A stretch of 64,000 nt of DNA, taken from NCBI GenBank assembly GCA_964187785.1, contig OZ076410.1, positions 38,626,001 through 38,690,000 on the forward strand, written 5' to 3'. This document shows positions 9,381 to 55,500 of this stretch, piece after piece (position 1 is the stretch's first letter; each line of letters starts with the position of its first letter). The notes beneath the pieces are model-generated. The model saw nothing but the letters and a program-made list of their open reading frames with translations, did no database searches and was not told the origin of the DNA. Position numbers and translations under genes: made by a program. The stretch comes from Amphiscolops sp. MND2022. Its lineage: Eukaryota.

Positions 9381-10925
9381 TGTCATAACCTTCATCGTTT
9401 TCACTCTGTTCAGAATCTCCTGAACATTCTATTTGATGATTTGAAAGGTTATTTGTTGTCTTATTTAGTCTATGAAAATTCTCTCTTGAGTCTTGGACCC
9501 GCTGGCCAATTCTAATTTTATGCCGTCCATACGACCCTAGGTCCACAGTCTGGTCCATAGGGACGTTTCTACTCGGATGCCGTCCGTCTGACCGAAGGTC
9601 CAATTTCGCGTTTTTACGCTCCCTGTGGTTTATGATGACATTTTCAATGCTCGGTAGTATTTTCTCATCAATAGCAGAGTTGATTACCTCCATGATATGG
9701 GAATTAAGATCAGATTTCATTTCCTCCAATTTCCTTGACATCTGTGAAGAGATTTCTGAACTAATTGCTCTGCTAGTTTCTACTGTAATTTCACTATTCT
9801 CACTTAAATTTGTATTCAAAAGAGATCTATAGTTACTTTCTTCATGACTGAAACCTTGTTGCTGTCTACTTGACTCAGGGTCAATTTCTATTTGATCTAC
9901 CGTGTTCTGGTCCCTAGTATCGCTGTTTGTATAATTTCCGAGCATCACATCTAGATTTTCAATATCAGACATTATGTCAGATTGTCTTGAACGTTTCTCT
10001 CTTGCTTTTTGCTTTCTGGTTGAAGGCATTTTCAAGAAATGGATTTGATTTCAACAGTGAATTGATCAATAGTAACAAACCAAACAGTTTTGTATCGTAG
10101 CGTTTTCAATCAATGAATGAATCCCTCCTTTTACAAGTTCCGCGTATATATAGTTTGTACTGCATGACACGCAATCTTTTGCGTGTCAGGAACTAAATTT
10201 AGGGTGATATCATTCTAAATATAGCCCCGATTAGATTATTAGGTCACTAGTTCTAAAAATAGACTGAGGGTTTTGACATTACGTCACACAAATGAAGAGA
10301 TATAAATAGCATCAAACAAACAGTGGGTATCTTTACATGTATTCAGGTTAAAATCAACCTTTCATGCATTGGTAACATCAATATTCAATGAAATTCTAAA
10401 TTTGACCATGCGTCAGCATGACTGCAATGATAGACTGGTACTTTACTCTCATTGGTCAACAAGTACTTGTGACCACACGTCGATTTGACTGCAGTAGAGT
10501 ACTAGTTAATTAGCTAAGATAAGTGTTTTAAGGTACTCTTTAAACACCGTTTAACAGCACTTGAGTTACTTAGCTAAGTGTTGCGTCACTAACTAAGTGA
10601 TGTACTTTAGGTTCAGATTAATTGCAAGTAATTTCATCAATGGGAAATTCTAAATAGTAACAAATCAATAATAGCAATTGAATAAATGCACAGATTAAAT
10701 GCCGTCAGTTTGACCTTTGGTCTGAATAGTAATATCGAAATTGCATGTTTAGCGTTAATAATTCGGTCATTACATGCATGAAACAAATATTAAACTATCA
10801 GAATAGATGCTAAAATCCGTTTCAGAGTTTGTCCTAGATAGGTAGTACACCGGGGGCTGGTGGCGTCTCATTACCTTGTGGCATCATTTGGTATAGGATG
10901 CCGTCACAAGCGGCAGCTTGCGACA
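9381..10925 (-). repeat. 3' LTR of element A (carries the first about 218 gag codons and the tail of the accessory ORF)
   Basis: Direct repeat of 23983-25527; only two substitutions noticed by eye; ORF 9358-10035 is the LTR copy of the gag 5' end. Confidence 0.97.
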
Positions 10926-11658
10926 CTCCCCCCGGTACAAGTATGAACGTCCCTGCTTTCATACCTGCCTGGAATGCATCACGTCTAGCAATCCGCTGCT
11001 CATAAGTTTCTCCTGGAATGTGTGTCTGTTCAAGGTACCCCAATGTTATTTCTTCTTTAATGTCCGCAGATGATTTCCCACAGATCACGCAACCAGTTTG
11101 GGTCGTCTCATTCGGTTGGCCACAGCTTCCCCCGACACTAATTCCGAGGCCCGTGATGTGTGAGTTGCCATACCATGAGTCTGCCAAACCTTGAGGTTGC
11201 GTAGGCTGGTAGGCGTCAACTGAGGGTCCTTGGTCTTCTGGCGGAGGTGACCATGGGGAGTCCAGTATTGGGTTTAGCTGGCCACAATACGTTATTGGGT
11301 GGTCATCCGCATTTGAGCCATAAGAGGTTCTTGGGGGGCCCCCAACACACCAATCGAGCAAGTCTTGTGACGGGTCTGTAAAAGTGCTCACTGATCCAAT
11401 TAGATCGTCATCTGGTATGTTCAGGTCGTTCAAGCAATGAGCTAATTCTGTAATCATCGCCCGACCCGCGGTGAGTTGTGGAGGGAAAGGTATATTTTCA
11501 CGATAACAAGCAAGAACTTGTATGTCGTCGTCCGAATCTTGACCTTCAGGTCCGTCTGCAATGGACACTGAGTCCACTTCCATTTCTTCATCAGATGACT
11601 GGTACGAAAGGCTAACCAGAGGTCTATCGTGTTCCTCCAAAGAAAATTGTAGAGACAT
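10834..11658 (-). CDS. Accessory sense ORF of element A, 274 aa from MSLQF, unknown function
   Basis: Homologous along its length to 58336-59160 (MSLQF, SDxxxVLAC, CVxCGK, IKEExTLxYLExTH, LVPGGVSQA, PGVLPI); crosses the PPT and stops inside the LTR. Confidence 0.85.
   Translation of the reverse strand: MSLQFSLEEHDRPLVSLSYQSSDEEMEVDSVSIADGPEGQDSDDDIQVLACYRENIPFPPQLTAGRAMITELAHCLNDLNIPDDDLIGSVSTFTDPSQDLLDWCVGGPPRTSYGSNADDHPITYCGQLNPILDSPWSPPPEDQGPSVDAYQPTQPQGLADSWYGNSHITGLGISVGGSCGQPNETTQTGCVICGKSSADIKEEITLGYLEQTHIPGETYEQRIARRDAFQAGMKAGTFILVPGGVSQAAACDGILYQMMPQGNETPPAPGVLPI
10926..10933 (-). other. Polypurine tract GGGGGGAG of element A
   Basis: Abuts the TGTCGC start of the 3' LTR on the element strand; identical in element B. 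Confidence 0.85.
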
Positions 11659-12299: not shown

Positions 12300-12390
12300 G
12301 TAAGAGCAATAGAGATAATAATATTGATAATAATAATTGTACTGTTATCAGTAATAATAATAGTAATAATAATAATAATAATAATAAGGA
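12300..12390. repeat. (AAT)n-like low-complexity tract in the internal spacer of element A
   Basis: AATAAT runs; a shorter ATT run occupies a similar position in B (about 57715-57735). Confidence 0.7.
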
Positions 12391-13160
12391 TTTTGGACAG
12401 TAAGTTAATGGTAAGAATTAGCAATTAGTAGAAGTAGTAGTTGGAGGGTCAAGTTAGTGAGAGGAGAGGTGTACTAGATATCAATTAAAGTTGTGCCGTC
12501 GAGATGACTCATAGTCCAACATATTGGTAGTGGTTAGTAAAACTTAATCGCGCACTAGTAACACGCTGCCGTCAAGTTGACGTTACGTCCCATTTCGTGC
12601 AATATTCACCACTAGCTTCAGTTTCAGTCTATTAATTGTCTTCTCAAGCAGCATCACTTGAGCTATACTGTATTATCCGTAATCTGTATAGTCTCTCTGA
12701 CCTTGAGTCGCACACTGATTTTCTGTAATCTAATTCTAGTGATTCCACTACATTCTATAGCTTAAGCTATACTTCCAATCACATAATTTTGTATCGTCAA
12801 TTTCTATTTTGGACATTATCAGCCCTCTTCGTGGGCAGCAAAGCTAATTTTACTCCACTGGCTTTGAGTATCCAACAACAGTTACATCTTCCTCTTGAGT
12901 GGGTATTGAAGCAATCAACGTTTGGACATTGCTGCAGAAACATCCAATTTCCTTATAGTGCAAGTGTCAAAAGGATCTCATCAATTCCGCCAGCCCTTCA
13001 TGGATTCAGCGTCAGGTTGGTTCTTTTAAATGTGTTAAAATTAGGCTTGATCAGGGCTCTTAATTTCAACAAAGTCACTTCCTCCATCGTGAAATGTTCA
13101 CATACAGTATGAACATTATGTCAAAGGAACTTCCGGAAGTATTTTGTTCAAAGCGCTAAG

Positions 13161-16100
13161 ATGGATTCATATTCAGGAAGTGAGCCGCGCTTATTTATCT
13201 CATTTCATTTAGATAATGAGTTCAACGACCAACCTCTCCAATTGAATGCGGAGGAAGAAAGAATGGAGACCAGCGAGTCCTTTGTGACGGCATCCCCCCA
13301 TGCCGGAAGCCCCACTTTGTCGAGTGATCAAGGCTGCAATCAAAAGGAAGCTACTCTCCAAACGGATACCCTGGCCAGATCCGAGACTGCTACAGAGATG
13401 GATTTTACAATCATTCCCGAGGGCTCTCAGGCAAAAGAATCCGAACAAGTGCAGGAAAAGACCTAACTGTAATCCTGCAAACATCCTCAACTATGCAATC
13501 TGAACCGCCAACAACTCCACAAACCGTTGTGCCAACTGCCGGTGTGGAAAGCAGCAGCACTGACGAGAGTTGCGGGGCATACATAGCTCGAAAATGGCAA
13601 CAGTTAGGCGATTCTCACGAAGATCGTACCCAAGGTCCAAGTGACGGCAACTTGGGTAAGTGCAGTGAGAGCATCACATTAGAGTTGATGCCACAGCGAG
13701 GTGCACCAGACCACACTGAAACCGATTCGGACTCCGTATCAAGGGTCGCTTTCTTGGATTCCCCTGTCGCCCCTATCAAGAGCAACCTCAAATCGATGTA
13801 TAAGCCACCTGAGGCGAAGATTCAAAAACTCTGCGTCAAAATCGGTGAGACTAGAAAAGAGCTTTCCATATCTAATGCTGAGACAGAAGGTTCATCACAC
13901 TCTGAGGGTTGTCTTAGTTCGACGGATGAATTTGGATCAAACGACCCAATTGTCGCTAGTCCACGTGTCCCTTCCGATAGATTTGCCAGTGATACCGGGC
14001 ATGAGTCAGCTGGTCCTGCTGGGTCGACCGTTGCGGATGCTCTGTATGCTCCTTTGGACAAGAGTCGATTGAGAGTTAGTGACGCAGGTAGTGTTACATC
14101 CGTAGATTTTCCAGAGGAGGCGACGCGAAGTCCCCAACTTTCAGCAAGTAGCCGCATTATGATAAAAGAATGCTTTGAGGCCGTGACTCCAGTAATGCTA
14201 CCGCCGGGCCATACTACTTTAGCCCTTAATGAGAGTCAAGTCAGCAACATTCTGAGGGTCGTTGCTGACGAAGCAGTTAAGTCTTCTCTGAAGGCAATGG
14301 AGAACCTGGTTCATCAGACGTGCCGATTGAGCCTTGGAACGCCACAATTTCCTCCATCAGGCAGAGTCACCCCCAAGAGGTCTAGTTACCGGGCTCAAAG
14401 TCCAGGGGTGCAATCCGGTTTGTTATCTGGAGAGACTAGCGATACCAGTGGAGCCTTAAGGAGCGATGATGAGTTTGCCAGCATAGGGTATGCATATGAA
14501 CATTCTGATTTGAGAGTCAGCCTTTCGCTCCGCCGCCTGTTGGCCCCCCAGGGTGCAGTCAGACTGACCCAATGTCAATAGAAGGAGAACTCCGAGTTGA
14601 AAGTCCGGGGAACCAGACTCTTGCCGTGTTAAAAGCGGAAGCTATTGCTGAAAAGTCTAAGCCTACTCCTCGGAAAAAACCTCGCAAGAAGCCATCTCCC
14701 AGCAGGAGTGTAAATCGACATCGGGTGCCCCGTGCCTGCAAAATCATGAAGGAGGCGTATTTTAAAGGCATGGAGTGGACTAAAACTTTCGTGTCTGGGC
14801 CCATGGATCCCCGATGGAATCCGTACAAGATATACTGTCAAATTTGCAAGGGCAATGTATCAATTTATGGGCAGGGAGCACGAGAAATCCTCCGCCACCA
14901 TCGCACCGAAAAGCACCTAAGAAGGGACCAAAAGTGGCGATATCATCATCTTGCGACTGAAGATCCAGTAACCAAGATGGTGAAGCACCAAGTCCGCGGT
15001 GGGGACGGAAGGCTACTGACACCGTACGAGCTACAACTTGAACTGCCAAAATTCATTGGAGTCGAACTCGTCGACATTGGTGAAAAATTGCCATTTTATG
15101 ACGATTATCTGAGAGGAACGGATTACATGGCATCCTCTTCGGAGAACAGAGTGAAAGTGCAGGTTTCAGTCCTCGGCCATTATTTGCGCTCTTTTGGAGA
15201 CATCAGTGCTTTGAGAAACCTGTGGCGGGATATTGGAGTTGTAGTCAACCACCAGTCCTTATTTACAGACTTCGATTGGAGTAAAGAACGTTTATCTGTA
15301 AGTATCTTATTGCCGTCACGCTGACTTGTTGTCCGTTTCTGACCTTTGATTAACAATGTCTAAAAGTTAGTTGTTGTTCTTTCAGGTCCTGTTCCATCAC
15401 TTGTTCTTGCAAACCATTCGCGATATTGGCACACACGTGGTCGAGTCAGGAGAGTATTCCCTGGAATTCGTGAAGCAGGGAGTCTTTCTGCTTGTTTTCA
15501 TCCGGTTCTGGCGAAAAGACGAGTTATGCCGGGTCTTCCTGAAACGTACCGGACGAGTTCTCGGACAAAGCTCAGCTGAACTTAGTTTGATCAGTGACCT
15601 CATGGCCGTCTTCTCAACTACTCCCAATATCGTCAGCTGTTCTGGTGGTACCCTAGAAACGATTCAGATTCTAGACAATTCTCCATTCAGTCAACATGGG
15701 CTACAGCAACCACTCCAATTTGCTGAATTCTCCTTGGCCAGATTGATGCACAAAGAAAGCTATAGTGTTTTCGGACGGATAGATTTTCATTCTGTGCTGA
15801 AATATCTCATTGTCTTTCTTGGAGGATGCCTCGACTGTGATTGGACTCTCCTAACCCCCGTCCTTGCGAAGGTTTGTCATTTCCCCAGTCTGTATTGATT
15901 TGTTATGTCTTAACTGAGTTCTTAAGTCTAATAATTTTAGGCAGTACGGACTTGTCAAATCGAGCTGGAGACATTACCTACCCTGTGTCAGGAGCTTCTC
16001 GCCAATTGGACCAGCATTACTACTTATCTCAATACTCACGCTCCGCCCCATGAAATGATGGGGGTGAGGAAACAAGTAAGCTTCTGCCGTCATTGCGACC

Positions 16101-17427
16101 TCAAGTCCAAAATAAATTTCTCATGTTATTATCTTGTCTTTCAGCCGCAGAATCTTGAGAGAGCGATGCTCAGTGATGAATTGTTCCTCTGCCGGCTTGA
16201 GCTCTTCTATCGCCTCGTCAGGGATTGTGAGTGGTTCCTATTCATTGTTTATAGCGCTGATTTAGTTTGCGTAATTTTAATATTATACTTTATTTAGACA
16301 CTACTAGTTTCGTGCCACACTTGGTCGAACGACGTGATCACGGATTTCATATTTACCGACAGTTGTGTCAATTCCTTCTCAAGCTCGGCAGACGATGCAT
16401 CAAACCCAAAAGCCTTCCACCAGAAAGTGATTTGTCCGGAATCTTGAACATAGTTGTTTCTGATGCTAGAGCCCTTACAGTGACTGACTTTATTGCGCGA
16501 TCTAAACTGGAGCAACGACTGAACGTCGCTTGTAAGATCAAGGCAGAGAAAGAACTGAGTGACAGGAAGGGGAACCGTGCCAATTTGCCCAAACTTGTGA
16601 AGGAAGGAAAGGAAGAGTTTGGACGTCTTGCTCGCGCATATGTTGCTTATCTGTTCCACGCTGCTCAAAATAATTTGCAACTTACGTCCGACATTGTCAG
16701 AGGACTCGGATCTTTCGACCTGGACATCATGTTTCGTTCGCCACTCAGTCAGGCACTCTACTGTTTCAAGCTGCTCTTTCGCAGCTTCCAACTTCGTGGG
16801 TATTTCCAGCCTGCCGATGAATCTGTCTGCACTGAAGAATACCTATCCTTCTTGGACGAATTGAGGAAGGAGATGCCCGAGTTGGACCAGCCCAGGGTTA
16901 TAATCATTGATGCTGTTACCTTCATATTGCGACATGATGCCTTAAAGTCCCGGCCTCATCTCGCGCGTATTTTCAAATTGAGCTGTTTGTGCCTCGACGA
17001 AGATTACACAATTATGCCCTCAGTGAAGTTTGGACCAGTCCGGACTGATGATCCGAAAAGTAAACTGATTGACACCATCCTTCCAGTGCAATCCTTTTTC
17101 ATAAATGTGGGCCGCAGTATCGACGCCTTGACTACGTCTTCTTCGATCTCTGAGTTCCTGGCTTTTGAGCCTACGTTTGGAAGTTCCGCATTCTCCGACA
17201 CATACAGTCCATGGGACGGCTTGGATTATTTTGACCGTTCCCACATTCTCTCTGTCTTGAAACCGAAGGCTGTCCCTCAGAAGACTGATTCTCGAAGGAT
17301 ACAATTCAAGAATCCAAAAGGTAGGAGCGTTACCAAGAGTCTTCCTGCCTCCAGTTTGAACAATTCGCCAGTTAAGCGGCAATCTGATAGTGAATTGCCA
17401 TCCCCTTCATTTACTAAAGACACTTAA
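13161..17427 (+). CDS. Antisense spliced gene of element A; exons 13161-15297, 15386-15871, 15941-16075, 16145-16226, 16298-17427; about 1320 aa; zinc finger plus putative inactive hAT-transposase-like body
   Basis: GT-AG introns of 88, 69, 69 and 71 bp join the ORFs in frame; exons match those of element B; two single-base frameshifts in exon 1 (about 13457 and 14510); finger at 14836-14916. Confidence 0.85.
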
Positions 17428-17654
17428 TTGTACTATATGTACATTTGTTTTTAGTTGTATTTATGTATCTTTCGTTTGTCTGTCAGTCTTGAGTTTTTTA
17501 TTTTATCATTATTTGCAGTCTGTTTGTACAGTTGTGTCGTTATGATGTCTGTATTTGATCTGTTATTGTGGACTACAAGTCAGTCGAGGCCCATAAAAAG
17601 ATACTTGTAGAGTCAAAAGGTGTTGAGTCGGGCCAGTGAATTTACATGTTCTAA

Positions 17655-20600
17655 CTAGTATCTGTATTCGTCAGTAAAGTTGGGGGTAGGATTGGGACGT
17701 AGGTTATATCTCCCTCCCCTAGGACTTTCATTTTCTACAACACAATCATCAGTTTCCTCAATTAATACATCGGGCACGGTTGTATCGTTCCCCCCAGAAG
17801 TTGAAAATTCTGAATTTTCATCTCTAGGTAGGTCCTGATTTGTCAATTCATCGTTTTCAAATTCGGTACTTTGTTGCCGTCTATCGGACTGACGGTCTTC
17901 ATTGTGTGCATTTCTTGAGTACTGCTCCGTATTATCAGCCTCAGTATTTGATTGCCGTCGCGCGGACCGAAGGTCCGCTTCGTTTATTTCGTTTGAACGT
18001 GAGTCACTATCAGTATCATCAGCGTGAGCGGCGTCAGTATTTGTTTGCCGTCGCGTGGACCGTAGGTCCAAATCTGTGATTATGGCATCCTGTTCATCGG
18101 AATTGGTAGGGAGTTCATTAGTAACAGTCCGATTTTCAGAATTAGGAGGGAAATCGTCAAAATTGGTTTCCCATGAAATGATGTACAGATCATCTCGTGG
18201 AATAATAATTTCATCGTCTGCTTGTAAATTTCCTTCGGGACGAATGTCTGGTGGGGTAGTATTTGGAGTGTATTTTCTAAGGCGTATTCGGTGTAATAGC
18301 TGCGTTTTGTTAGTACTAAGTTTACGAACAATATAGTTGTCGTTAGGTAAAACTTTTTCAATGACGTACGGTCCGATCCAACGAAATTCACGAAAAGGAA
18401 TTTTAGAGCCTTGATTGTCAGCTAGAGGTTGTAAAATGAAGCAAAAATCTCCTTGTTGTAGAGGAGCTGCTTTAGCCTTTCGGTCATAATATTCCTTGTA
18501 CTTTAAATATGATTGCATGATGTTTTTCTTTGTTTGATCGATTAATATTTGCGTGCGTCTTTGAAATTCTTCAGCAAAATCAGTCGTTGGAGTGATCTTT
18601 GGGTTAGGGTTTAATCCTAACCGATGGTCTAAGATATTATAAGGTACTCTTCCGTGAAAAATTCGGGTGGGTTCACATCCAAGACTTGAATGATAGGTTG
18701 TGTTATAATTAAGGACGGCCAATGGGAGATATTTGTGCCATTGACGCCTGTATTCGCCTGATGCCATTTTAAGGTTGCCCTTAAGGCTGGCATGAGTGCG
18801 TTCTAGTTTGCCTATCGTCTGAGGATGCTTTGTGGTCGCGCACCGAAGGTGAATTCCTAAAATTTTGGTAATTTCATCTAGGAGTTTGGACGTAAAGGCA
18901 GTGCCTTTGTCGGTGATGAGCGTAGTCGGCAAATAGGAATGTTTTGTCATGATATCAATAATGACCTTTGCCGTATTGATGGCCGAAGCGTCCGTTACTG
19001 GTTAGGCAAAAAGATATCTCGAAAACACGTCCAGAGCCGTTATGACATTTTCATAACCTCCGCTGGGGGGTAAGTTGGGCAGAATGTCAATTTGTAAGGC
19101 ATCCTCTGGGCCAAAATCCCATTCAGGTAAGTTGAGTAATTCAGGTGTTATGGATGCGTTATTGATTCTTTTGTCTTTTATACAAATTTCGCACCCTTGG
19201 ACCCACTTTTTGACAATTTTGGCAATTCCAGGAAAGTAGTATTTTCGTCGAATTTCGTGCAGCATTTTTGAGATTCCCGGGTGTTTGTTCGCGGAACCAT
19301 GTAGTGATTGAAGTAATTCTGTGACTAGATGTTTCGGTAATAATGCCTGGCGGAATTGGACACTGCCTGTTTCATCGTAGTAGTCTCTGAAAATGATGTC
19401 ATCATGTACGGACAGACGGTCAATTTGACGGCAGTAATGTCGGTAGCGCGAATCTTGCTGTAAGATGGTTTCAGAGTATTCTTCTTTTTGCAATTTGAGT
19501 CGTAATTGATGTAAGATAAGATCGTTCTGTTGTTCTATAGCCATGGTGGTTGGTTTTGCCAGTTTTTGTATATTTTGAGTTTGGAATTGTGTATTATCAT
19601 GAGTGCTAAGATGATCTAACAAAATATCAGGAGGTTGATTCATGGGGTTTGACCTGGCGCCTTGTTTGCGTTTCCAGATTTGTTCTTCTGTTTCTTCATC
19701 ATCGTCCGTATAGAAGATCTGTTCCTCTTCAGTAACTCCCGCTGATTGGACGTTGAGTTCGATTGGTGTGGTGGAAATATCTTCTCGTATCCGGAGTATG
19801 AGTTTTTCTTTGGGACAGATTTCTAGACGTGACAAGTAGTCAGCGGCAGTATTGTTTTTGCCAGGTATATGGGCTATTGTGAAACTGAATTGCATAACGT
19901 AGTCACACGCGTTCCACAATGTGGGTGGAATGATTTTTGTTTGAAAAAAGCGAGTGACTGACTTGTTGTCTGTTAGTATTATCACCGGTTTCGGGGTCCC
20001 CCAGAAGATATGGCCAAACTCTTTGAATGCAAAGAATATTGCTAGGAATTCTTTGGCATAAATGGACATCTTCAGTTGGGCTGGACTAAAGGTCTTGGAT
20101 CCATATGCTACAGGTGCGAAGGCTTTTCGCGTCGAAGTATATTTTTCCATCGGATCGTCCTCGATGAGAACTGCATAACCTGCTGCCGAAAAACTAGCGT
20201 CTGTCATCAGGGCTATCTGTTTATCGGGAAGAGGTTGTTTGAGTGCCAGTTCACAACATCGGTCAAGAGCTTTGTTGATCTCGGTGAATTTTTCTAACAG
20301 ATCGGGTGTCACCATGACTTTGGCATCACTTTTCAATAACTTGAAAAACGGTGTGAGTTTTTCTGAGAGTCTAGGAATGTAGTTACGGTAGTAGTTCAAG
20401 AATCCCAAGTATCTTTGAAGGGCTTTCTTGGATTTAGGGAATTTGGTCTTCTCCAAGAAATTCTGGACCCTGGGTCGTTGTGGCCGCACCCCTTCAGGAG
20501 TGATGGTACGTCCCAGGAAGTCGATTTCCTTGGCTCCGAAATGGCACTTGTGCATCGTTAGTTTGAGGCCAGCGGTCCTGATGCACTGGAACGTTGCTCG

Positions 20601-22844
20601 AAGGTTGTTGATGAGCTGAGTAGCGTCGTTTGCAGCTATCCCAATATCGTCTACGTACTGAGCGCATTGGTCAGCTTTTATCACTTTATCCAGATATTCG
20701 CGCATAAAGCTCGAAAATGCGGACAGCGCTCTGCTTAGACCTTGGGCAAGTCGGCGATAGGCAAATGTTCTGCTGGCAAAATTGAATGCCAGCATCTCGA
20801 TTGACCTCTGGTCAGCCATCTGAAGGCAGTGGTATGCTTGAGAACAATCAAGTTTGCAAAATAATCGTTTACCTGCCATGTGCTGCGCAGCATCCGTTAG
20901 TGTGCTGACAGGATGGTTGTTGTTGATGTAATCGTCAGAAATCAGGTTGTTGATCTTTCGGAGGTCAACCAGGAGTCGAAGTTTGCCGTTGGGTTTTTTC
21001 TGGGCAAAGATGGGACTTGCATATTTGGAAAATGGGAGAGTTGTTATAATCCCATATCGATGTAGTAGTGCTAGTTCTACAAGGATATCTTCTTTGAGGT
21101 TGATAGGAGTAGGTAAGCTTTGACTATAGGCAGGAGAGTCATCTTTAGGGGTCAAAGTGACCTTGAAGTCCTCGTTCATACCTATGTCAAAGCGGTGTCG
21201 TGCAAAAATATCGTGAAATTCAACAAGTAATTCTTCAATTTGAGCAATTTCGGCTGGGTTTAGTGTCGAGTCTGTCCAGTCGAAGTTAGCAAGGAATTGC
21301 TTCCGCGATTCGAGGTCATCGAGAGGGTTGAGTTTCTCTAAATCCTGGAGATTTCGTAGTTCCCTAAGGATTCTCTGTTGTATTGGTGTGTGAGTTTGGG
21401 GATCTCCTGGTTCTTCTGGAGTAGGGAACCAATAGTTCTCACTATCATCGCTAGTTTTCGGAGATTTGATCAGGCTACTGGCATAATAGGCAGCATTTTC
21501 CGGGTTATCCTTCAAAAGGTGCCAAGTGGTCACAGGATCAATGGGTTTGACGTATTTCATCTGCTCTGGTGTGAGGACAGAGAAATTGGCAATGTGCGAA
21601 CCTCTTTTGAGGGTGTACGGTTGGTCAGTGAAGTTGTTGACATGGATTGATACCTGTCCTTGGGTCAGTGTGACTAGAGCGGCGCAGAAGGTTATATCAC
21701 CATCTTCTGCAAGGTCGCTGCTCGGTTGAAGAATTCCAGTGACGTTTGTGTCGTCATATAGTTGTGAGAACATGGAAACCATATGTCTGTCGTTGGGGGG
21801 AATAGTTATATCCTCCCGTGCACAGATAGGTTCCATGACATTAGTGTACTTGTGGTCAGCTGTTTTCAATTGCATGGAGAAGAAAGGGAAGTTTAAAACT
21901 CCTTGACGCATGTCCAGTATGGTATTGTTCCGTTGCAGGAACGAGAGACTAATTAACGGACTTGTGAGTTTTTCCATAACGATGAAGATCTCGTGGAAAT
22001 CGATGTCCCCGACCTCGAATTTGAGTTCAACGGTGCTCTTTGGAGTCTCCAGCTGTCCATTGGCTACCATAATCTGGAAGTTGGGTGCTGGGCCCTCTTT
22101 AATTATTGACTGAGGGGCTAACAATCGGATTTTACGTAGATCAGCTTCTGGGATAGCGCTAGATAGGGCTCCCGTGTCTACAAGGCCATCTAATGTTAGT
22201 TCGCCAAAATCCATCGGGAAGTAGAGCATCCGTCGTTTGTATTTGAGTCCCAAATTGGTCGTCAACGGGACGTAGTCAGGTTCACCGTTTCGTGAGATCA
22301 GCGTATTCACAAAGCGCTCTTCCACTGTTGCCGTCAATGTGACCAAAGGTCCATTGTGTGGAAGTTGTTCGGATATTGCCTCCTGGATTGGTGAATTGGT
22401 GTTAATCCACACATTTTGCCAGGGGTCAACAGAGGCCGTGGATAGTTTTGTGTTCAGCATCTGATCAATGTGGGGTTGATCATGTTCGATATCTGCAATG
22501 TTTTTGGTAAAGTTGTTGTAGAAGTGTAGCTGATGTTGGTTGTAGATTTGAATGTCCCAATAGGGGTCTAAACCGAAGTCCGGGTCTAGATAATATGGGT
22601 TGTAGTTATCGATTAGGGGAAGGGGGCGAATGGTCGTAGTATTAGAGTGCTGTCTGTCGGACTGAAGGTCCGGTTTGTGTAAGTGAGTAGGCAAATGCTT
22701 CACCTGCTGCTGCCAGTCAGCTGATGAAGTTCCTTTAATTGAAGAGTAATATTCAGTATAATATATAGTAGGAGGATCAGATATTATATATTGTCTGATA
22801 CGTAATTTTTCATTAATATGGAGTCGTGGCGAATCTAGTTTTTT
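17655..22844 (-). CDS. pol: Pol of element A (PR-RT-RNase H-integrase) with one nonsense codon at 19002-19004
   Basis: LVDTGA (protease), QYVDDIGI (RT), LMTDAS/KEFLAI/TDNKS (RNase H), HPGISKM...CEIC and D-D-E core (integrase), GPY motif; TAA where B has TAC in YLFAYPV; the frame is open from the slippery site. Confidence 0.95.
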
Positions 22845-24637
22845 GAGTTTTTAAGGATAGAAGTTGTGGGTTTATTGGTAGGGTCATCACGACTACTGGT
22901 CGTGTCGTCATCCTTTGGACTATCCAATTTGAGGTTTTTGGGCTTGAGGTGGGCTCCAGCGCCTTTCCAACATCTCTCCGCCGGGTGATTGGTTTTGTCA
23001 CAAGTCGGGCACTTTGGGTACTCTTTTTTGGTACTCGAGCCTTCATTGCGTTTTTGCTCTTCCTTTCGTTTTAGTTTTCGGCAATCGTCTTTGACATGTC
23101 CAGGTTTTTTGCAGTAGTTGCAAGTTATTCCTGGGTCAATGCCTGATGAAAGGAGTCCTTGTCCCGGTCTTGTGGCTGTCGGGGCTGTAGACATTGTGGG
23201 AACGGGAATGTCGTCACCTTCCTCAAGTCCATTCAACTCCAGTTCTCGTTCGAGATGAGTGACAATTTCTTCATAGGTGGCATTCTCTAATCGCGCCATG
23301 TTGACTGAACGTTTGAGTTTCGGTGGGAGTTTTGCGTATAGCAGACTGTCAATCATGGCTTGTGCGTGCTCGCCAAAGGCTTTTTCGGCGCCCTGATTGA
23401 GTTCCTCGAGAAAATCGGGCAATTTCATTGTGTTTGGGTCAAATACCAATTTGTGCCATTTATGTTTGGCAGTTGCCTGGGATTCAGGTTTGACATATTT
23501 CCTATGAAACACAGCTAGTACGTCTTCTAAGGTTTGTCTATTTGCTGAACTGATGTTGCGGAAGGTTTGCAGGGCGTTTTTGCGCAACAGTGAATGAAAG
23601 TGATTAATTTTCATTGCTTCCGTCATTTCTGGTTGCATCTTTATCACCGTGTGAAAAAGGTCTTCAAACAGTTCAAATTTTTCAGATTTGCCGTCAAATG
23701 TGAGTGTGGCAGTATTGACTGGTCGTACCATCAGTGTTTGTGCTGATGATTTGTTGTTCATTCCCATAATGACATCGGCAAGTCTGTTTATGGGGTCTAA
23801 AGGTGTTTGGGGCTGCATTTCCCGGTCATTGATAGGGTTTGAGGGAATTTGTGCCGGGAGAGTGGTATCTAATGTGTCATCGTTGACACATTGTTGATGG
23901 GGAATGTTGTTTCTGGACTGCGTGGGACGTCCGGTCAGAAATTCAGGGACTACATGTGGAGTAAGGTTGGCTCCTGTCACCATGTCATAACCTTCATCGT
24001 TTTCACTCTGTTCAGAATCTCCTGAACATTCTATTTGATGATTTGAAAGGTTATTTGTTGTCTTATTTAGTCTATGAAAATTCTCTCTTGAGTCTTGGAC
24101 CCGCTGGCCAATTCTAATTTTATGCCGTCCATACGACCCTAGGTCCACAGTCTGGTCCATAGGGACGTTTCTACTCGGATGCCGTCCGTCTGACCGAAGG
24201 TCCAATTTCGCGTTTTTACGCTCCCTGTGGTTTATGATGACATTTTCAATGCTCGGTAGTATTTTCTCATCAATAGCAGAGTTGATTACCTCCATGATAT
24301 GGGAATTAAGATCAGATTTCATTTCCTCCAATTTCCTTGACATCTGTGAAGAGATTTCTGAACTAATTGCTCTGCTAGTTTCTACTGTAATTTCACTATT
24401 CTCACTTAAATTTGTATTCAAAAGAGATCTATAGTTACTTTCTTCATGACTGAAACCTTGTTGCTGTCTACTTGACTCAGGGTCAATTTCTATTTGATCT
24501 ACCGTGTTCTGGTCCCTAGTATCGCTGTTTGTATAATTTCCGAGCATCACATCTAGATTTTCAATATCAGACATTATGTCAGATTGTCTTGAACGTTTCT
24601 CTCTTGCTTTTTGCTTTCTGGTTGAAGGCATTTTCAA
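22835..24637 (-). CDS. gag: Gag of element A, 600 aa, two zinc knuckles
   Basis: CNYCKKPGHVKDDC and CPTCDKTNHPAERC; capsid-like core LTFDGKSEKFELFEDLF; starts inside the 5' LTR. Confidence 0.93.
   Translation of the reverse strand: MKMPSTRKQKAREKRSRQSDIMSDIENLDVMLGNYTNSDTRDQNTVDQIEIDPESSRQQQGFSHEESNYRSLLNTNLSENSEITVETSRAISSEISSQMSRKLEEMKSDLNSHIMEVINSAIDEKILPSIENVIINHRERKNAKLDLRSDGRHPSRNVPMDQTVDLGSYGRHKIRIGQRVQDSRENFHRLNKTTNNLSNHQIECSGDSEQSENDEGYDMVTGANLTPHVVPEFLTGRPTQSRNNIPHQQCVNDDTLDTTLPAQIPSNPINDREMQPQTPLDPINRLADVIMGMNNKSSAQTLMVRPVNTATLTFDGKSEKFELFEDLFHTVIKMQPEMTEAMKINHFHSLLRKNALQTFRNISSANRQTLEDVLAVFHRKYVKPESQATAKHKWHKLVFDPNTMKLPDFLEELNQGAEKAFGEHAQAMIDSLLYAKLPPKLKRSVNMARLENATYEEIVTHLERELELNGLEEGDDIPVPTMSTAPTATRPGQGLLSSGIDPGITCNYCKKPGHVKDDCRKLKRKEEQKRNEGSSTKKEYPKCPTCDKTNHPAERCWKGAGAHLKPKNLKLDSPKDDDTTSSRDDPTNKPTTSILKNSKN
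22838..22844 (-). promoter_or_regulatory. -1 ribosomal frameshift heptamer A_AAA_AAC directly before the gag stop
   Basis: TCA AAA AAC TAG; the -1 frame is open into pol; same site in B. Confidence 0.75.
23967..23982 (-). other. Primer-binding site TGGTGACAGGAGCCAA of element A
   Basis: Begins TGG immediately after the LTR-terminal CA; identical 16-mer in B; resembles tRNA-Leu-type PBS (TGGTGTCAGGAG), primer unverified. Confidence 0.85.
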
Positions 24638-25527
24638 GAAATGGATTTGATTTCAACAGTGAATTGATCAATAGTAACAAACCAAACAGTTTTGTATCGT
24701 AGCGTTTTCAATCAATGAATGAATCCCTCCTTTTACAAGTTCCGCGTATATATAGTTTGTACTGCATGACACGCAATATTTTGCGTGTCAGGAACTAAAT
24801 TTAGGGTGATATCATTCTAAATATAGCCCCGATTAGATTATTAGGTCACTAGTTCTAAAAATAGACTGAGGGTTTTGACATTACGTTACACAAATGAAGA
24901 GATATAAATAGCATCAAACAAACAGTGGGTATCTTTACATGTATTCAGGTTAAAATCAACCTTTCATGCATTGGTAACATCAATATTCAATGAAATTCTA
25001 AATTTGACCATGCGTCAGCATGACTGCAATGATAGACTGGTACTTTACTCTCATTGGTCAACAAGTACTTGTGACCACACGTCGATTTGACTGCAGTAGA
25101 GTACTAGTTAATTAGCTAAGATAAGTGTTTTAAGGTACTCTTTAAACACCGTTTAACAGCACTTGAGTTACTTAGCTAAGTGTTGCGTCACTAACTAAGT
25201 GATGTACTTTAGGTTCAGATTAATTGCAAGTAATTTCATCAATGGGAAATTCTAAATAGTAACAAATCAATAATAGCAATTGAATAAATGCACAGATTAA
25301 ATGCCGTCAGTTTGACCTTTGGTCTGAATAGTAATATCGAAATTGCATGTTTAGCGTTAATAATTCGGTCATTACATGCATGAAACAAATATTAAACTAT
25401 CAGAATAGATGCTAAAATCCGTTTCAGAGTTTGTCCTAGATAGGTAGTACACCGGGGGCTGGTGGCGTCTCATTACCTTGTGGCATCATTTGGTATAGGA
25501 TGCCGTCACAAGCGGCAGCTTGCGACA
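23983..25527 (-). repeat. 5' LTR of element A
   Basis: Repeat of 9381-10925; TG...CA; flanked by TSD and PBS. Confidence 0.97.
24747..24776 (-). promoter_or_regulatory. Putative LTR core promoter TTGCGTGTCATG-N10-TATATATA
   Basis: Same motif and spacing in the LTR of B and in the solo LTR at 29231-29257. Confidence 0.6.
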
Positions 25528-44569: not shown

Positions 44570-46249
44570 TGTCGCAGGCTCCCGCCTGCGATGGGAACTG
44601 GTATCAGGTTGCCCCTGATACCTGCGACAATTTACCCGTCCCCCCAGGAGTGCTGCTGATCTAAGCCGCAAAGACCATCAATACTTGAAAACATTATTCA
44701 TTGAAGGATTTGAACTCATTATTAGCTCAAATTTTTATCTATGTACAATTACGGACCTTAAGTCCATTTTCCCTAGTAAGACTTATAATCGGAGTTAGAC
44801 TCTCAATGTAGTACATTTGCGTGAAATCTAGTAATTTTGCTATCTTATGGATCTACCATATTCAATGCATATATTTAGTCATGTAAACCAGTAGTCAATT
44901 ATAGTGAATGTAATCAATTGCGTGCAATTAAAATTAACAAAGCAGCTATATAGTTGAAAGGAAACGCGTTCGAATTGTCCCCCGCGTTGGTCAGTTCGGA
45001 CGCGTTGTCCGCCAAATTATTCAACCAATCAGCTGTGAGCACTAGTGCTTTCGTTCACTCATTCGCCGCAATTCACGTCTACACGTATTAGTGTGGACCA
45101 CCAGTCCAAGTGCTATACTCTATTTACATTAGTTTGTTATATAAACAAATAGAGTTCTCTGGAGCGGTGTTATGTTGCTAATTAGACATAAAAGACTTAC
45201 CGCCATTTAGCCCCCCCCCCACATTAGCTTTCACTCCCTTTCGTAGAATTAAGCTATTTTTAGAGTGATGTCACTCTTCTAATAATATCCCCAGGGTGAT
45301 TTTGCCCGCATTTGATGCTATTAATATACCAAACCCTAGAAAACGTCACTATGACGTCAGGTACAGTAATCTAATTTTATCCCTGTGATGATCATAATTT
45401 TGCGTGTCATGAGGCGCTGATTATAAATAGTGGGGACCCGAGGTCTCCAGGATCACAATCAACAGTCTGTTTTGACCACGAATACACACACAATCCATTC
45501 CAAGTGAACTCTCAACTTTATTCAATCTTGACGCATAGTCAATTTGCCATATCTTGCTACTCTACTTAACTATCAATCATTCATTTGTTTCCTCGTTCTT
45601 TTAAATATACTGTAGAAGCTCTAATATACTCTTAGTTGAGCTCAAGTCTCTTCAATGCCTTCTACCAGAAAACAAAGTGCTAGAGAGAGACGCTCTAGGC
45701 AAATAGACATAATGTCTGATGCTGAGAACTTAGATGTAATGCTTGGATCATATCCTAGAAATGACTTAGAAAATGATTTTGATAGAAACGATGAAATGGA
45801 CCTAGAGTCTAATAGGACAAGAGTTGACTTAGCACAAAATAGTGAGGATTTTAGGTCACTTTTGAACTCCAACAGTAGAGAGAACAGTGAATCAGCTGTT
45901 GAAACTATGAGGCTTGTTAACTCTGAGGTCACTAAGAAAATTGATGAACTGAGAAGGGAACTTAATTCTCAGTTAGTAGATGCTATAAACTCAGCAATCA
46001 CTGAGAAGGTATTGCCTGATATCAGAAATATGGTGACCAGTCAAAATTCAGTATTTCGGGAAGAAGTGGACCACAGGTCCAGAGGACCAAACAGGACCTC
46101 CGAAGAATTAGGTAGTAGAAACGCTTGGAAAAGCAATTCAAAGCCTACTTTGGCTTCCAGTAGTCGACAAGACAATCTCAGGAGAAACTCAGATGTTTCT
46201 CAGTCCAGTGATGATGATCACGAAGAAATGATAACTAACAGTCATGACA
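44570..46249 (+). repeat. 5' LTR of element B
   Basis: Repeat of 59066-60744; roughly 15-20 substitutions plus one poly-C indel by eye. Confidence 0.97.
45400..45429 (+). promoter_or_regulatory. Putative LTR core promoter TTGCGTGTCATG-N10-TATAAATA
   Basis: Motif and spacing shared with the A LTR. Confidence 0.6.
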
Positions 46250-52520: not shown

Positions 52521-55500
52521 TTAGCGCAGGCTCTTAGCAGACTGGGCCACTTCGGAATCCGACAAAAGATGCGTCGGACGCACATTCTTCTTCGAGTACT
52601 GTAGGGTACTGGGGGACTGCTGGACGATGACGGAACTGGAAGTACCCGCCTTGCTGGCTTTGCTCTGAAGTCTGCGATCAGGATGCAACTTCGACAGAAT
52701 CTCCGTCCTCCCGAAATTATCCAAACCCGACCATGGATCATACCTGTCGCCAAGCGCGGTGCGACCGAAAGTGGACTCCATTTCGAGGAATTCGGAGATT
52801 GAGGCATCGCTGGTCACTGACTCGACTGAATTGGCCACTTGGTGGAAGTATGATTGTACCGGCAGTACAATGTCCACTAGCTTGCTGGTGGGATCCTCCG
52901 TGTTGACTGAGCTAAACCTGACTGTTGGAAGACTTCGAAAGGGCTCGTCAATGCACAGGCAGGCCAAACTGAAGCAACTCAGCAGCAAAGGACGTGTGGG
53001 CAAGTTCGTTTGCCCCATTAGGAAGGTGATAGTGTCCTTGATCAATAAAGTTGGCTGATCAAACTCCGAGAATTTGACGCGCAGCTCGTCGACGAAGGAC
53101 AAGTAATCTTCCTGCGCTGGAGGCTCTTGTTCCTGGGAGAAATACCCACGGAGACGGAAGATGGTAAATAGCTGACTAAAACACTTTGTGGCCAATGAGA
53201 GAGGCAGCTTTAGGAGGATTTCTAAGTCAAAACTAGCTAATCCTTGGGCAATGTTCGTGGTAAAGTTAAAGTGACCACGCGTGTCCTTGAATAAGTGCGT
53301 CACATAACTTCTCGCCAAACGTCCAAACTCCTCCTTGGCTTTCTCCTTCAATTCGTCGATTGACGTCTTCTCTCCCTTCTGTTCGTGCTGGTCAATCTCA
53401 GCTTTCAGCTTGCAAGCATGGTCAAGCTTCACCCCAAACTTAGTCCTGTTGAGGAACACTGTGACTTTGAGGGCAGGGGCAGTTGTCGTGTCCAGATCCA
53501 GAACGCTCGCTATGTCCTCCTCGGCAGGCAAAGCAGTAGGAAGAACAACGCGCTTGGCCAACTTGCGGAGGTAGAGACAAAGCTGGCGAAACGAGTAGAA
53601 GGCCCTGTCACGTCGGCCACTGAGACTGAGGGAGAAACTGGTGGTATCTGAAACAAGTCATGAGGACGACCTACGCCATGAAGACCTACGGTCCACAGAA
53701 GCAACGCCAACCAAAAGGGATCCAAGTTGGAACAGTCAAGCTTAGATTGGAAATTTAACGAAGTCTCAGCGCAGTTCAAGTCAAATGATACCTATAAGGT
53801 TACTGCGAAGCAATGTGAAGGCTAAAGCACAAGAAAACTTAAGGTACTAACAATCACGAACGAGCTTTCCAAAGAACTCTAGCTTGCAAGGGAAGAAGTC
53901 ATCGTGAATGATGGAGCGCCCAAAGTTCTGTGGCTGAAAGAAAACAGATGTTATTGAGATTTGCTCTACCAGTGACCATGAGGTCAGCAGTCGCAACTTG
54001 ACCTACCTGATTACGGACTCCTTGCATTTGCTGCTGTGGTGAATGGTCAGAGAGATAATTGATAACAGTCTTCCAGTTAGCCATCAACTCCTGGCACAAT
54101 TTTGGGACTGTCGTCACGTCGAGCTTGCAAGTCTTTATGGCCTAAACGAAAACCCTGTTTCACACCAAAACAAGTTTTAGGCAACACACGGAGAATAGAC
54201 CGAGAGTCTTGCCTTTGTTAATTCAGGGGTGAAGAGGGTCCATTCCATCTCGAGGCTTCCACTCAAGCAAACGACCAGGTATTGCAGTACCGAGAAGAAG
54301 TCGATGCGCCCGAACACGGAGTAACTGTCCTTGTGCATCAACTTCTTGATTGCAATCTCGTCAAAGATGGTCGGACGCTGTACCCCATGCCTGGTGAGTG
54401 GCGACCGATCTAATAACTGCACTAGACCACGCGTAGCCCCGGAGCAACACACCAGATCAGCTTCAGTGGAGATCGCAGCTAGGAGGGTAGTTACATGGTT
54501 TACCTCAGCCGACGTCTGTCCACAGGTCCTACCGGTCCGTCGTAGGTAGACTCGACACAGTCTATCACCCTTCCAGAACCTGACGTGGAGCAGAAGGAAA
54601 ACCCCTTGAGGTTCGAACTCCACAGCAAATTGTCCAGAGGTCAGGATGTCGTTACCGATATTTGGGACAATCTGAGTGAACAGATGATGGAACAACACCT
54701 TAAAAACAACTTTGGATTAGACCATACGAACACAAATGTCCACCCGGGCCTACAGTTCAAAACCTGAACAACAACTCTTGGAGTCTAGTCAATTCTATAC
54801 AATACGGTGATGGGACTAGAAGTCATTTAGACATGAAGGGACTACTTACCGAGAGTCTTGTCGTGCTCCAATCGATGTCGCTGAAAATGGCCTGGTGGTT
54901 CACGGCCGCGCCAACTTGCTGCCAGAGACTTCGAAGGACCTGAATGTCTCCGGACAGAGGCAAGAAACGTCCTAGTACGGAGATCTGCATTTTGGCGCGA
55001 TTCTGAGGTGAAGGAGCCATGTAGTCTACGCCTGCCATCGCCTCGTCGTAGAACGGCAACTTCTCCCCGATGTCCACAAGTTCGCTATTGATGAAAAGCG
55101 GCAACTCCAGTTGGAGCTGATAGTTAGAGAGCACTTGGCTGTTTCGTCCTCTGACTTGATATCTACGCCGTTTGGTGAGGGGATCTTCAATGGTGAGGTA
55201 CTCGTACCTCCAGCGCTGGTCTTTACGCAAGTGTCGTTTAGTTGCGTAATGTCGCAAGATTTCCTTCGGGCCTTTAGCTCGTATCGACACGTTACACTTG
55301 CAGATCTGGCAGTAGATCTTATGCTTATTCCACTTGGGGTCGACTGGCCCCGACACGAACGTTCTGGTCCACGGCATGGACTCAAAGTACTCCTCCTTCA
55401 TGACTCGGCCTATTCGTCTTCTAGGTCGCGCTGGTCCCCGGGCTCTTGTTCGGGCTGGATTCTGCTTCCTGGAGTGGCGTTGTTCAGTGATGGCCTCTTG

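Follow-up and report, generated by a model that had tools for sequence, protein, structure and literature searches.

A five-exon gene antisense to gag-pol in Ty3/gypsy-type LTR retrotransposons

Antisense genes of LTR elements

Antisense accessory ORFs are already known from LTR elements of plants and from deltaretroviruses, and they have usually been handled as simple ORFs. In the plant Tat/Retand lineage, the antisense ORF called aORF-3R (Grande gene23, RIRE2, Retand TRP28) is found in most copies, and its proteins are predicted to be DNA-binding or nuclear, although their function is not established (PMC7264820; PMC11963269). The gene described here, which was found in two elements of the 64,000-nucleotide stretch of DNA analyzed (the window), resembles aORF-3R, which is likewise antisense to gag-pol and located between pol and the 3' LTR. 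Its protein, however, is far larger (~1,300 aa), the TRP28 domain (Transposase_28, PF04195) or any other domain shared with them is absent from it according to Pfam, and the gene has four conserved spliceosomal introns, whereas none are mentioned for the plant ORFs in PMC7264820 and PMC11963269. The elements themselves also differ from Tat/Retand, as they have a dUTPase in pol, a DUF1759-type gag, and an additional sense ORF3. The DUF1759 gag and the dUTPase would speak against Tat/Retand membership, and the host is probably not a plant.

Minus-strand protein-coding genes are also present in deltaretroviruses, namely HBZ in HTLV-1 and APH-2 in HTLV-2 (PMC11963269). Both viral genes give spliced, nuclear products that regulate the element. 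HBZ itself is small and of the bZIP type, and its transcript, with a single intron, is initiated in the 3' LTR. The gene described here differs in having four introns, all within the coding sequence, and in lacking a bZIP or any other known domain. The ATG of the present gene, in contrast, is 2.2 kb inside the element, measured from the LTR, with conserved motifs directly upstream, pointing to an internal promoter.

A third point of comparison is experimental. In the his3AI and neoAI assays, a marker is placed antisense to the element while its intron is in the element sense and is removed from the element RNA, the missing intron reporting a new insertion; reverse-oriented cargo genes are also reportedly used in retroelement vectors. 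The logic is alike in that an intron antisense to the element RNA stays in the genomic RNA, but here the antisense orientation applies to the introns as well as to the gene, so that they pass through with it and leave it intact. Our literature searches turned up no account of an antisense gene with several introns in LTR elements from outside the plants, although such an absence is no proof.

Two elements and the gene they share

In the ENA metagenome assembly ERZ25074608, the window is contig ctg181354_81x_l. Two Ty3/gypsy-type LTR retrotransposons of 16 kb each, A and B, were recognized in the window by their LTRs, target-site duplications, primer-binding sites (PBS), and polypurine tracts (PPT). 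Their main features are as follows:

9381..10925, minus strand: element A 3' LTR, with the purine tract GGGGGGAG (element strand) alongside
10834..11658, minus strand: element A ORF3, sense, 274 codons; crosses the polypurine tract into the 3' LTR
17655..22703, minus strand: element A pol, with protease, dUTPase, RT, RNase H, and integrase (Pfam)
22835..24637, minus strand: element A gag ORF, 600 codons; starts ~650 nt within the 5' LTR
23983..25527, minus strand: element A 5' LTR, 1545 bp, TG..CA, 99.87% identity to 9381-10925
44570..46249, plus strand: element B 5' LTR, 1680 bp, 98.9% identity to 59066-60744
45655-47370, plus strand: element B gag, starting inside the LTR
47373-49127 and 49130-52297, plus strand: element B pol, in two frames
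58336..59160, plus strand: element B ORF3, sense, 274 codons; terminates inside the 3' LTR
59066..60744, plus strand: element B 3' LTR, paired with the LTR at 44570-46249

Element A is flanked by the 5-bp target-site duplication GAGAG (9376-9380 and 25528-25532) and element B by GCTAT (44565-44569 and 60745-60749), and an empty paralogous target site of B is present at 38905-38950. In both elements, the PBS-like TGGTGACAGGAGCC lies next to the 5' LTR on the element strand; the polypurine tract abuts the 3' LTR on its 5' side. The Pfam domains of pol (gag-asp_proteas, dUTPase, RVT_1, RT_RNaseH, Integrase_H2C2, rve) follow the Ty3/gypsy (Metaviridae) order with a dUTPase added after the protease, and the gag of A matched DUF1759 (E=1.2e-5) and, weakly, zf-CCHC. 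Relative to the pol of its intact sibling L008 (1682 aa), the pol of A has zero indels; an in-frame stop near 19000, within the integrase, divides it into parts of 1233 and 431 codons. The ORF3 products of A and B share 44% identity (E=9e-71), and the 90%-identity cluster of the former comprises 101 sequences, of which many are exactly 274 aa long; no Pfam match was found for ORF3, even at E<=5. An Rfam search of the whole window gave no match, and the flanking ORFs have no Pfam domains.

The antisense gene is located between pol and the sense ORF3 and 3' LTR, on the strand opposite gag-pol and tail-to-tail with pol. This arrangement with pol was observed in A and B and in the copies L001, L002, L003, L008, and L009; seven further copies in all were taken from two metagenome assemblies. 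The exons and introns in the window are:

13161..15297, plus strand: gene A exon 1, frameshifted; CCHH zinc finger at 14836-14916
15298..15385, plus strand: gene A intron 1, 88 nt, phase 0, GTAAGT..TTTCAG
15386..15871, plus strand: gene A exon 2, 486 nt
15872..15940, plus strand: gene A intron 2, 69 nt, phase 0
15941..16075, plus strand: gene A exon 3, 135 nt
16076..16144, plus strand: gene A intron 3, 69 nt, phase 0
16145..16226, plus strand: gene A exon 4, 82 nt
16227..16297, plus strand: gene A intron 4, 71 nt, phase 1, splitting a Tyr codon
16298..17427, plus strand: gene A exon 5, including the stop codon, 227 nt from the pol stop; predicted helical C-terminal domain
54850..56870, minus strand: gene B exon 1, frameshifted
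54699..54849, minus strand: gene B intron 1, 151 nt, phase 0
54213..54698, minus strand: gene B exon 2, 486 nt
54142..54212, minus strand: gene B intron 2, 71 nt, phase 0, GC-AG
54007..54141, minus strand: gene B exon 3, 135 nt
53934..54006, minus strand: gene B intron 3, 73 nt, phase 0
53852..53933, minus strand: gene B exon 4, 82 nt
53648..53851, minus strand: gene B intron 4, 204 nt, phase 1
52521..53647, minus strand: gene B exon 5, including the stop codon; 223 nt separate it from the stop of pol

All eight introns had been placed exactly in the first-pass annotation. The splice ends are GT-AG throughout, with the exception of the GC-AG intron 2 of B (donor AAG|GCAAGA, a GC donor shared by the sibling L009). 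As that annotation had also reported, both copies have intron phases of 0,0,0,1, internal exons of 486, 135, and 82 nt, and a Tyr codon that is split by intron 4. The exon peptides of A and B align with 45-57% identity, and the divergence claimed for the introns was seen in their lengths (88/151, 69/71, 69/73, and 71/204 nt in A/B). With the introns removed, a frame of 852 codons is open in A (14572..17427) and one of 834 codons in B (55524..52521). By blastn, gag-pol is 75-78% identical between the two elements, while no similarity was detected in the antisense gene region. The canonical AATAAA signal is absent after the stop codon in A, L002, L003, and L004.

The true starts of exon 1 (13161 in A, 56870 in B) and the frameshifts within this exon in both copies had gone unreported earlier. 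Compared with a sibling of 99.7% identity, exon 1 of A lacks a single nucleotide at each of two places (13459/60 and 14508/09), and exon 1 of B has a 2-nt insertion at ~55540; because of these frameshifts, neither A nor B as assembled encodes the full-length protein. In the intact siblings of A, which number at least nine, the exon-1 ORF has 721 codons (exon 1 plus a brief read-through into intron 1), and in those of B it has 661-682 codons. Five copies have an intact spliced ORF: L002 (1293 aa), L003 (1261 aa), L004 (1318 aa), L008 (1323 aa), and L009 (~1,290 aa), the product in intact copies thus having ~1,260-1,320 aa. The A and B insertions are recent but defective, and they would therefore have to depend on intact siblings.

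At the ORF level, we found 524 homologues, all of them exon-sized ENA metagenome ORFs, and for dozens of the 90%-identity clusters the representative is 600-800 aa long. A scan of JGI metagenomes with the finger profile returned no relative. No homologue was found outside retroelements, and pol adjoins the gene in 7/7 loci with enough flanking sequence.

Upstream of the ATG, the alignment of six copies revealed a conserved block:

13014..13139, plus strand: conserved non-coding block, putative internal promoter or 5' UTR
13014-13022, plus strand: motif AGGTTGGTT, -147 from the ATG
13047-13057, plus strand: motif TTGATCAGGGC, -114 from the ATG
13130-13139, plus strand: palindromic, ETS-like CTTCCGGAAG, ~-30 from the ATG

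The block also contains CTTCCTCCATC. The distances of the three listed motifs from the ATG are fixed, the 10-mer CTTCCGGAAG occurs once in the window against 0.04 occurrences expected, and these non-coding motifs have been kept although synonymous sites are saturated. Such conservation suggests an internal promoter; alternatively, the motifs could serve the sense genomic RNA as cis-signals. The sequence GGT(A/G/T)(A/G)GT, ~147 nt before the ATG, was considered as a splice donor in the 5' UTR, and no conserved acceptor follows it.

Conservation of the introns and selection on the protein

The conservation of the junctions in more copies had been set as a test of the gene model, and the same positions, phases, and exon sizes were found in the seven further copies. 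In L001, L002, L003, L006, L008, and L009, they recur at protein identities down to ~38%, and recurrence in copies so divergent excludes chance as the source of the intron set. The siblings A and L008 were inserted separately and share 99.6% identity over 15.9 kb; three of their four introns are identical, and intron 4 differs at one base. The four introns are copied faithfully through retrotransposition, and they survive because the sense genomic RNA reads them as CT..AC, which is unspliceable. The proposal that the antisense orientation lets the introns survive is thus sound, but its premise, that the RNA replication cycle clears sense introns away, was overstated. Antisense orientation guarantees survival, but other routes exist: retroviruses and some LTR elements retain sense-strand introns since their unspliced RNA gets packaged, and antisense orientation is therefore not the only way to keep introns.

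Two copies lack an intron precisely. Intron 3 is missing in L004 and present in its sister L006, and intron 1 is missing in L005; the contigs of L004 and L005 come from short-read assembly, which may be of DNA or RNA. When the exon-2 part of the intron-1-less protein P0017 was used as a query for others of this type, only P0017 itself was returned. The precision of the two absences argues that the junctions are used, and, together with the intact spliced ORFs in five copies and the purifying selection described below, it lends indirect support to real splicing. The frameshifts in exon 1 of A and B, and the premature integrase stop of A, speak against taking these two loci as actively spliced and translated, as the first-pass annotation had proposed.

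Codon comparisons indicate that the antisense protein is under purifying selection, with rough omega values of ~0.2-0.3. Between lineages, dN is 0.41-0.67 and synonymous sites are saturated. For A and B, dN is 0.41 in the antisense gene and 0.10 in pol, and with a dS of ~2 the resulting omega is ~0.2 versus ~0.05; these values are rough, the LWL85 dS of pol having been used because the NG86 dS is saturated for all inter-lineage pairs. The pol core retains 86-95% amino acid identity between lineages against 38-52% for the antisense protein, which changes three to four times faster, with invariant exon lengths and indels that keep the frame. In the gene tree, A, L001, and L008 are grouped with B and L009, apart from L002 and L003, and the pol tree of the six shared copies is consistent with it, resolving only that split. 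The antisense gene was already present in the ancestor of this element lineage and has been inherited vertically within it, and the intron-bearing gene that the first-pass annotation had recognized within a retrotransposon holds as a real protein-coding gene that belongs to the element.

The antisense protein and its possible role

The only recognizable feature of the protein is a CCHH zinc finger, BED-like, with a basic stretch in front of it. In the motif C-x2-C-x16-H-x5-H, residues C33, C36, H53, and H59 show little or no variation across 27 sequences. The AlphaFold model of the finger region (pLDDT 80) forms a beta-hairpin and a helix at the motif, and that of exon 5 is a helical bundle with a core pLDDT of ~88. 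The finger is like those of the ZBED family and of hAT transposases in its C-x2-C...H-x5-H on a beta-hairpin and helix and in the basic stretch before it, but the remainder of the protein is without hAT features. The best Foldseek match of the finger model was the BED domain of ZBED1, which is not significant (E=1.1, probability 0.20), and ZBED3 was also matched; nothing was below E=0.2 for the finger and exon-5 models against PDB or for the exon-5 model against viral structures. Pfam searches with the exon pieces and the long exon-1 ORFs gave no family at E<=5, zf-BED and bZIP included, except for two sub-threshold matches on P0021 (E ~0.02), neither of them TRP28. PDB sequence searches with the finger-domain and exon-5 profiles gave chance-level matches only, among them MafB at E=0.7.

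We consider it likely that the antisense gene serves a "complex" Ty3/gypsy-type LTR retroelement as an accessory gene. It would be transcribed from its own internal promoter, through the motifs in the 150 nt before the ATG, and splicing of its pre-mRNA would use the four conserved junctions. With its basic, NLS-like stretch followed by the BED-like finger, the product may be a nuclear, nucleic-acid-binding factor that acts in trans for the element, much as accessory or regulatory proteins do in retroviruses. It might control sense/antisense transcription or counter host silencing, and the fast evolution of the protein would be compatible with host-element conflict. The proposed regulatory role rests on analogy, as there is no Pfam, PDB-sequence, or significant structural match.

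An intron-bearing host gene transduced in reverse, by read-through or by DNA-level recombination, could instead be carried along without serving the element in any way. Cases of LTR elements transducing genes are documented (review PMC7264820), the spliceosomal introns would suggest that genomic DNA and not a processed mRNA was acquired, and the antisense protein is unlike known retroelement proteins. Transduced cargo, however, is usually present in one or few copies only (PMC11963269), whereas this gene occurs in every lineage examined, across saturated synonymous divergence and with a tree consistent with that of pol. Its ORF has been maintained intact at an omega of ~0.2-0.3, and pol is adjacent in all seven loci with enough flank while no homologue turned up outside retroelements, which makes a mere passenger unlikely. 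It is the lack of function that is disfavored; an ancient capture as the origin is still compatible with the data.

Still less probable is a nested DNA transposon, in which a hAT-like (BED-finger) transposase gene inserted into an ancestral element would have been co-propagated since. The spacing of the finger and the weak ZBED1 and ZBED3 matches fit such an origin, as do the size of the conserved part (~740 aa, that of a transposase) and the fact that transposase genes with introns are common. On the other hand, the zf-BED, hAT dimerization, and DDE/RNase H transposase families gave no Pfam match at E<=5, the C-terminal domain is modeled as a bundle of helices that matches neither PDB nor viral structures (the models cover the finger region and exon 5), and around the gene in A or L008 there are no terminal inverted repeats, only chance-level matches of 14-31 nt. 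Finally, although regulatory antisense transcription of retroelements is widespread (PMC7264820) and A and B belong to recently active subfamilies in spite of having no full-length ORF, a function of the antisense transcript itself (as a source of dsRNA or small RNA, or by transcriptional interference) with an incidental ORF is very improbable, since frames of ~1,300 codons that open in five divergent copies only once the same four introns are removed, invariant exon lengths, frame-respecting indels, and dN far below dS are unexpected without selection on a protein.

What sets the accessory gene favored here apart from simple antisense ORFs is its full eukaryote-style organization, with its own putative promoter, four introns conserved in position, and a product of 1,300 aa, maintained while the element diversified over a long time. 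It is a natural demonstration that a retroelement can own and pass on a spliceosome-dependent gene by means of its opposite strand. ORF-based annotation of transposable elements will miss such genes, because their database homologues are all exon-sized fragments. The slow pol and the fast yet constrained antisense protein offer a testable handle on host-element conflict, and the variants precisely lacking an intron provide a route to study spliced antisense RNA feeding back into element DNA. More tentatively, with a confidence a little short of even, we suggest that these elements represent an undescribed lineage of complex LTR retroelements in a non-plant, probably animal, host, with four genes: gag, pol plus dUTPase, a sense ORF3, and a large multi-intron antisense gene for a fast-evolving nuclear zinc-finger regulator needed in trans. 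If so, this regulator would be needed for the propagation of the element or for evading host silencing, and its gene would be a retrotransposon counterpart of the retroviral accessory genes, reliant on the host spliceosome.

Elements A and B and their sense-strand genes

Self-comparison of the window revealed two full-length LTR retroelements, A and B. Their LTR pairs have TG..CA ends and 5-bp target-site duplications (GAGAG in A, GCTAT in B), and in both a PBS-like TGGTGACAGGAGCC adjoins the 5' LTR and a G-rich purine tract precedes the 3' LTR. By Pfam, the pol domains follow the order protease, dUTPase, RT, RNase H and integrase, and gag matches DUF1759, with an additional weak match to a CCHC knuckle. 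Both are Ty3/gypsy-type elements, and the DNA similarity between them is confined to gag-pol (75–78%, blastn). There is an in-frame stop within the integrase of A, and the pol of B is split over two frames. The dUTPase, an uncommon accessory domain among Ty3/gypsy-type elements, lies between protease and RT, at ~21580–21830 (minus strand; Pfam E=1e-6) in A and ~48380–48640 (plus strand) in B.

Main features of the two elements
Element A: 9381–25527, minus strand, LTRs of 1545 bp, 99.87% identical
Element B: 44570–60744, plus strand, LTRs of 1680 bp, 98.9% identical
gag reading frame: 22835–24637 (minus) in A; 45655–47370 (plus) in B; begins ~600–650 nt inside the 5' LTR
Orphan ORF, a copy of the gag N-terminus in the 3' LTR: 9358–10035 (minus) in A; 60150–60758 (plus) in B
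ORF3, sense strand, 274 codons: 10834–11658 (minus) in A; 58336–59160 (plus) in B
Spacer between convergent stops, ~225 nt: 17428–17654 in A; 52298–52520 in B; 14263–14493 in locus L002

Because gag starts inside the 5' LTR, its N-terminus is repeated in each 3' LTR as an orphan ORF, and the gag start is also the sole segment over which the LTRs of A and B resemble each other (~80% over 94 nt). ORF3, a third conserved gene of these elements, crosses the polypurine tract and stops ~90 nt into the 3' LTR. It is 44% identical between A and B, has a conserved CxxC, forms 90%-identity clusters of 101 and 16 members, and gave no match in Pfam. Its expression may depend on a spliced subgenomic RNA or on an internal promoter. 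The window lies within a 106-kb contig (ctg181354_81x_l, 81x coverage) of the ENA metagenome assembly ERZ25074608. The element family is very abundant in this assembly, with 215 members in the pol cluster at 90% identity.

Element B is inserted in a ~1.1-kb repeat, the parts of which flank it at 43967–44567 and 60750–61230. A second, uninterrupted copy of this repeat (38275–39405, ~5.6 kb upstream, 91–97% identity) contains the unoccupied paralogue of the target at 38905–38950 and thus provides an exact control, with the site empty, for the insertion of B. The tested flanks contain no host gene recognisable by Pfam, and Rfam matched nothing in the whole window.

The antisense gene and the transmission of its introns

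Between pol and the 3' LTR, both elements carry a five-exon gene on the strand opposite to gag-pol. The first-pass annotation had proposed four introns in it, with phases 0,0,0,1 and internal exons of 486, 135 and 82 nt in both elements, and all of these boundaries, phases and lengths proved exact. The introns are GT..AG, with the exception of intron 2 of B, which has the GC donor that had been reported (AAG/GCAAGA..AG), shared by L009, a sibling of B from the metagenome assemblies. After intron removal, the frames are open for 852 codons in A (14572–17427) and 834 codons in B (55524–52521). As also claimed, the exon peptides of A and B align (45–57% identical) and the introns have diverged, as their lengths differ and the gene region is not alignable by blastn.

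The start proposed for A, 13161, is the true start codon. The exon-1 frame is interrupted upstream of 14572 in A, and exon 1 of B is broken too. Compared with its sibling L008 (99.7% identical), A has two single-base deletions in this exon, at 13459/60 and 14508/09; in B, 2 nt are inserted near 55540 compared with L009 (98.9% identical). The single-base indels could instead be assembly errors, as the repeat is multi-copy and the metagenome was assembled from long reads.

A search with a profile built on the conserved exon-1 end retrieved 524 proteins. Each is an unnamed ORF call from an ENA metagenome assembly, and none has a Pfam domain. Most end a few residues past the donor of exon 1, which is what a prokaryote-style ORF caller should produce on running into an intron. 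The long ones (620–740 aa) begin with MD(S/F)(Y/F)SGS, the same motif as at 13161 and 56870. Nine loci were retrieved. In the five with flanks long enough to see pol (L001, L002, L003, L008 and L009), the gene is tail-to-tail with pol, as in A and B. The junctions are kept in further copies, at the same codons and with the same phases and exon lengths in L001, L002, L003 and L006 (splice-site scan), and all four carry over to L008 and L009 in DNA alignments to A and B. Intact spliced ORFs were found in L002 (1293 aa), L003 (1261), L004 (1318), L008 (1323) and L009 (about 1,290). The degraded copy L001 retains all four introns, but its exon 4 (L001 12712–12793) is interrupted by two in-frame TGA codons; these correspond to CGG and CGC (Arg) in A, a pattern consistent with decay of CpG sites by C-to-T change.

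A and L008 represent separate insertions that share 99.56% identity across 15.9 kb. Three of the four introns match exactly between them and the remaining one differs by a single base, which shows that the introns are copied by retrotransposition. The earlier proposal that antisense orientation lets them survive was borne out: in the sense RNA their ends appear as CT..AC and, by splice-site recognition, they are not removable from the genomic RNA.

Two loci from the ENA assembly ERZ1742291 lack single introns precisely: L004 lacks intron 3, with exon 3 joined to exon 4 (..KHH/PQS..), and L005 lacks intron 1, with exon 1 joined to exon 2. Since L004 is sister to the intron-3-bearing L006 in the tree (100/100 support), the intron-less state of L004 is derived. 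Removal this precise implies that these junctions have been used by the spliceosome, whether the loci arose from spliced antisense RNA copied back into DNA or are short-read contigs from partly spliced RNA.

Coding constraint, protein and flanking signals

Between lineages, dN of the antisense gene is 0.41–0.67 and synonymous sites are saturated (NG86 undefined); for A versus L001, dN is 0.13–0.19 and dS is saturated already. The pol of the same pairs was used as a clock for omega. With a pol dS of about 2 between A and B, the dN values of 0.10 (pol) and 0.41 (antisense gene) give omegas of about 0.05 and 0.2, respectively. Amino-acid identity between lineages is 86–95% in the RT-RNase H core and 38–52% in the antisense protein, whose N-terminal 450–500 residues are nearly unconstrained, two short motifs excepted. 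These sequence comparisons indicate a gene that is protein-coding and constrained, yet fast-evolving.

No part of the protein was matched by Pfam or by PDB sequences. The end of exon 1 encodes C-x2-C-x16-H-x5-H, invariant or nearly so in 27 sequences and preceded by a K/R-rich stretch. In the model of this finger (pLDDT 80), a beta-hairpin bears the cysteines and helices bear the histidines; its top Foldseek match, the BED finger of ZBED1, was not significant (E=1.1). Exon 5 is predicted to form a helical bundle (core pLDDT about 88), for which Foldseek found no neighbour among PDB or viral structures. The gene is not flanked by inverted repeats in A or L008.

Despite the saturated synonymous sites, six copies share blocks upstream of the antisense ATG at fixed distances.

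Upstream blocks in the six-copy alignment
AGGTTGGTT: about -147 from the ATG
TTGATCAGG(G/A)C: about -114 from the ATG
CTTCC.CCATC: upstream of the ATG
Palindromic CTTCCGGAAG, in B CTTTCGAAAG: about -30 from the ATG

We read them as a putative internal promoter or 5' UTR. The palindromic 10-mer at about -30, which may be ETS-like, is present once in the window, where 0.04 occurrences would be expected. A microsatellite resembling (AATAAT)n is located 630–860 nt upstream of the ATG, at ~12310–12330 in A, ~57720–57735 in B and ~330–345 in L004. On the antisense-gene strand, AATAAA is missing from the spacer in most copies, with none after the stop codon in A, L002, L003 and L004, and TGTAC/TGTA motifs recur just past the stop. 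Both A and B have a sense-strand AATAAA ~150 nt past the pol stop, which might define a short gag-pol mRNA.

A probable accessory gene of the element

The antisense gene is a real gene that belongs to the element and is transmitted with its introns. It is best read as an accessory gene owned by the element, expressed in antisense and spliced. Transcription from its own promoter and splicing of the transcript are both well supported indirectly. The predicted nuclear zinc-finger product would act in trans for the element, a role proposed by analogy with the antisense-encoded proteins of plant Tat/Retand-lineage elements (aORF-3R) and with HBZ, the deltaretroviral antisense gene (PMC7264820, PMC11963269). 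A functionless passenger gene, a role as RNA only, and a BED-finger transposon nested in the element are all disfavoured by how deeply the gene is conserved, by constraint at the protein level and by the absence of transposon features. As the origin of the gene, an ancient capture is plausible.

Accessory genes in antisense orientation are already established, as is the antisense-intron principle. The protein described here differs from the plant aORF-3R proteins in being several times larger and in lacking the TRP28 domain that marks them; its gene has four conserved introns, whereas introns in aORF-3R are not mentioned in PMC7264820 and PMC11963269. The literature searched gave no account of an antisense gene with several introns in any non-plant LTR element. 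The antisense gene of A and B is real, unannotated and worth pursuing.
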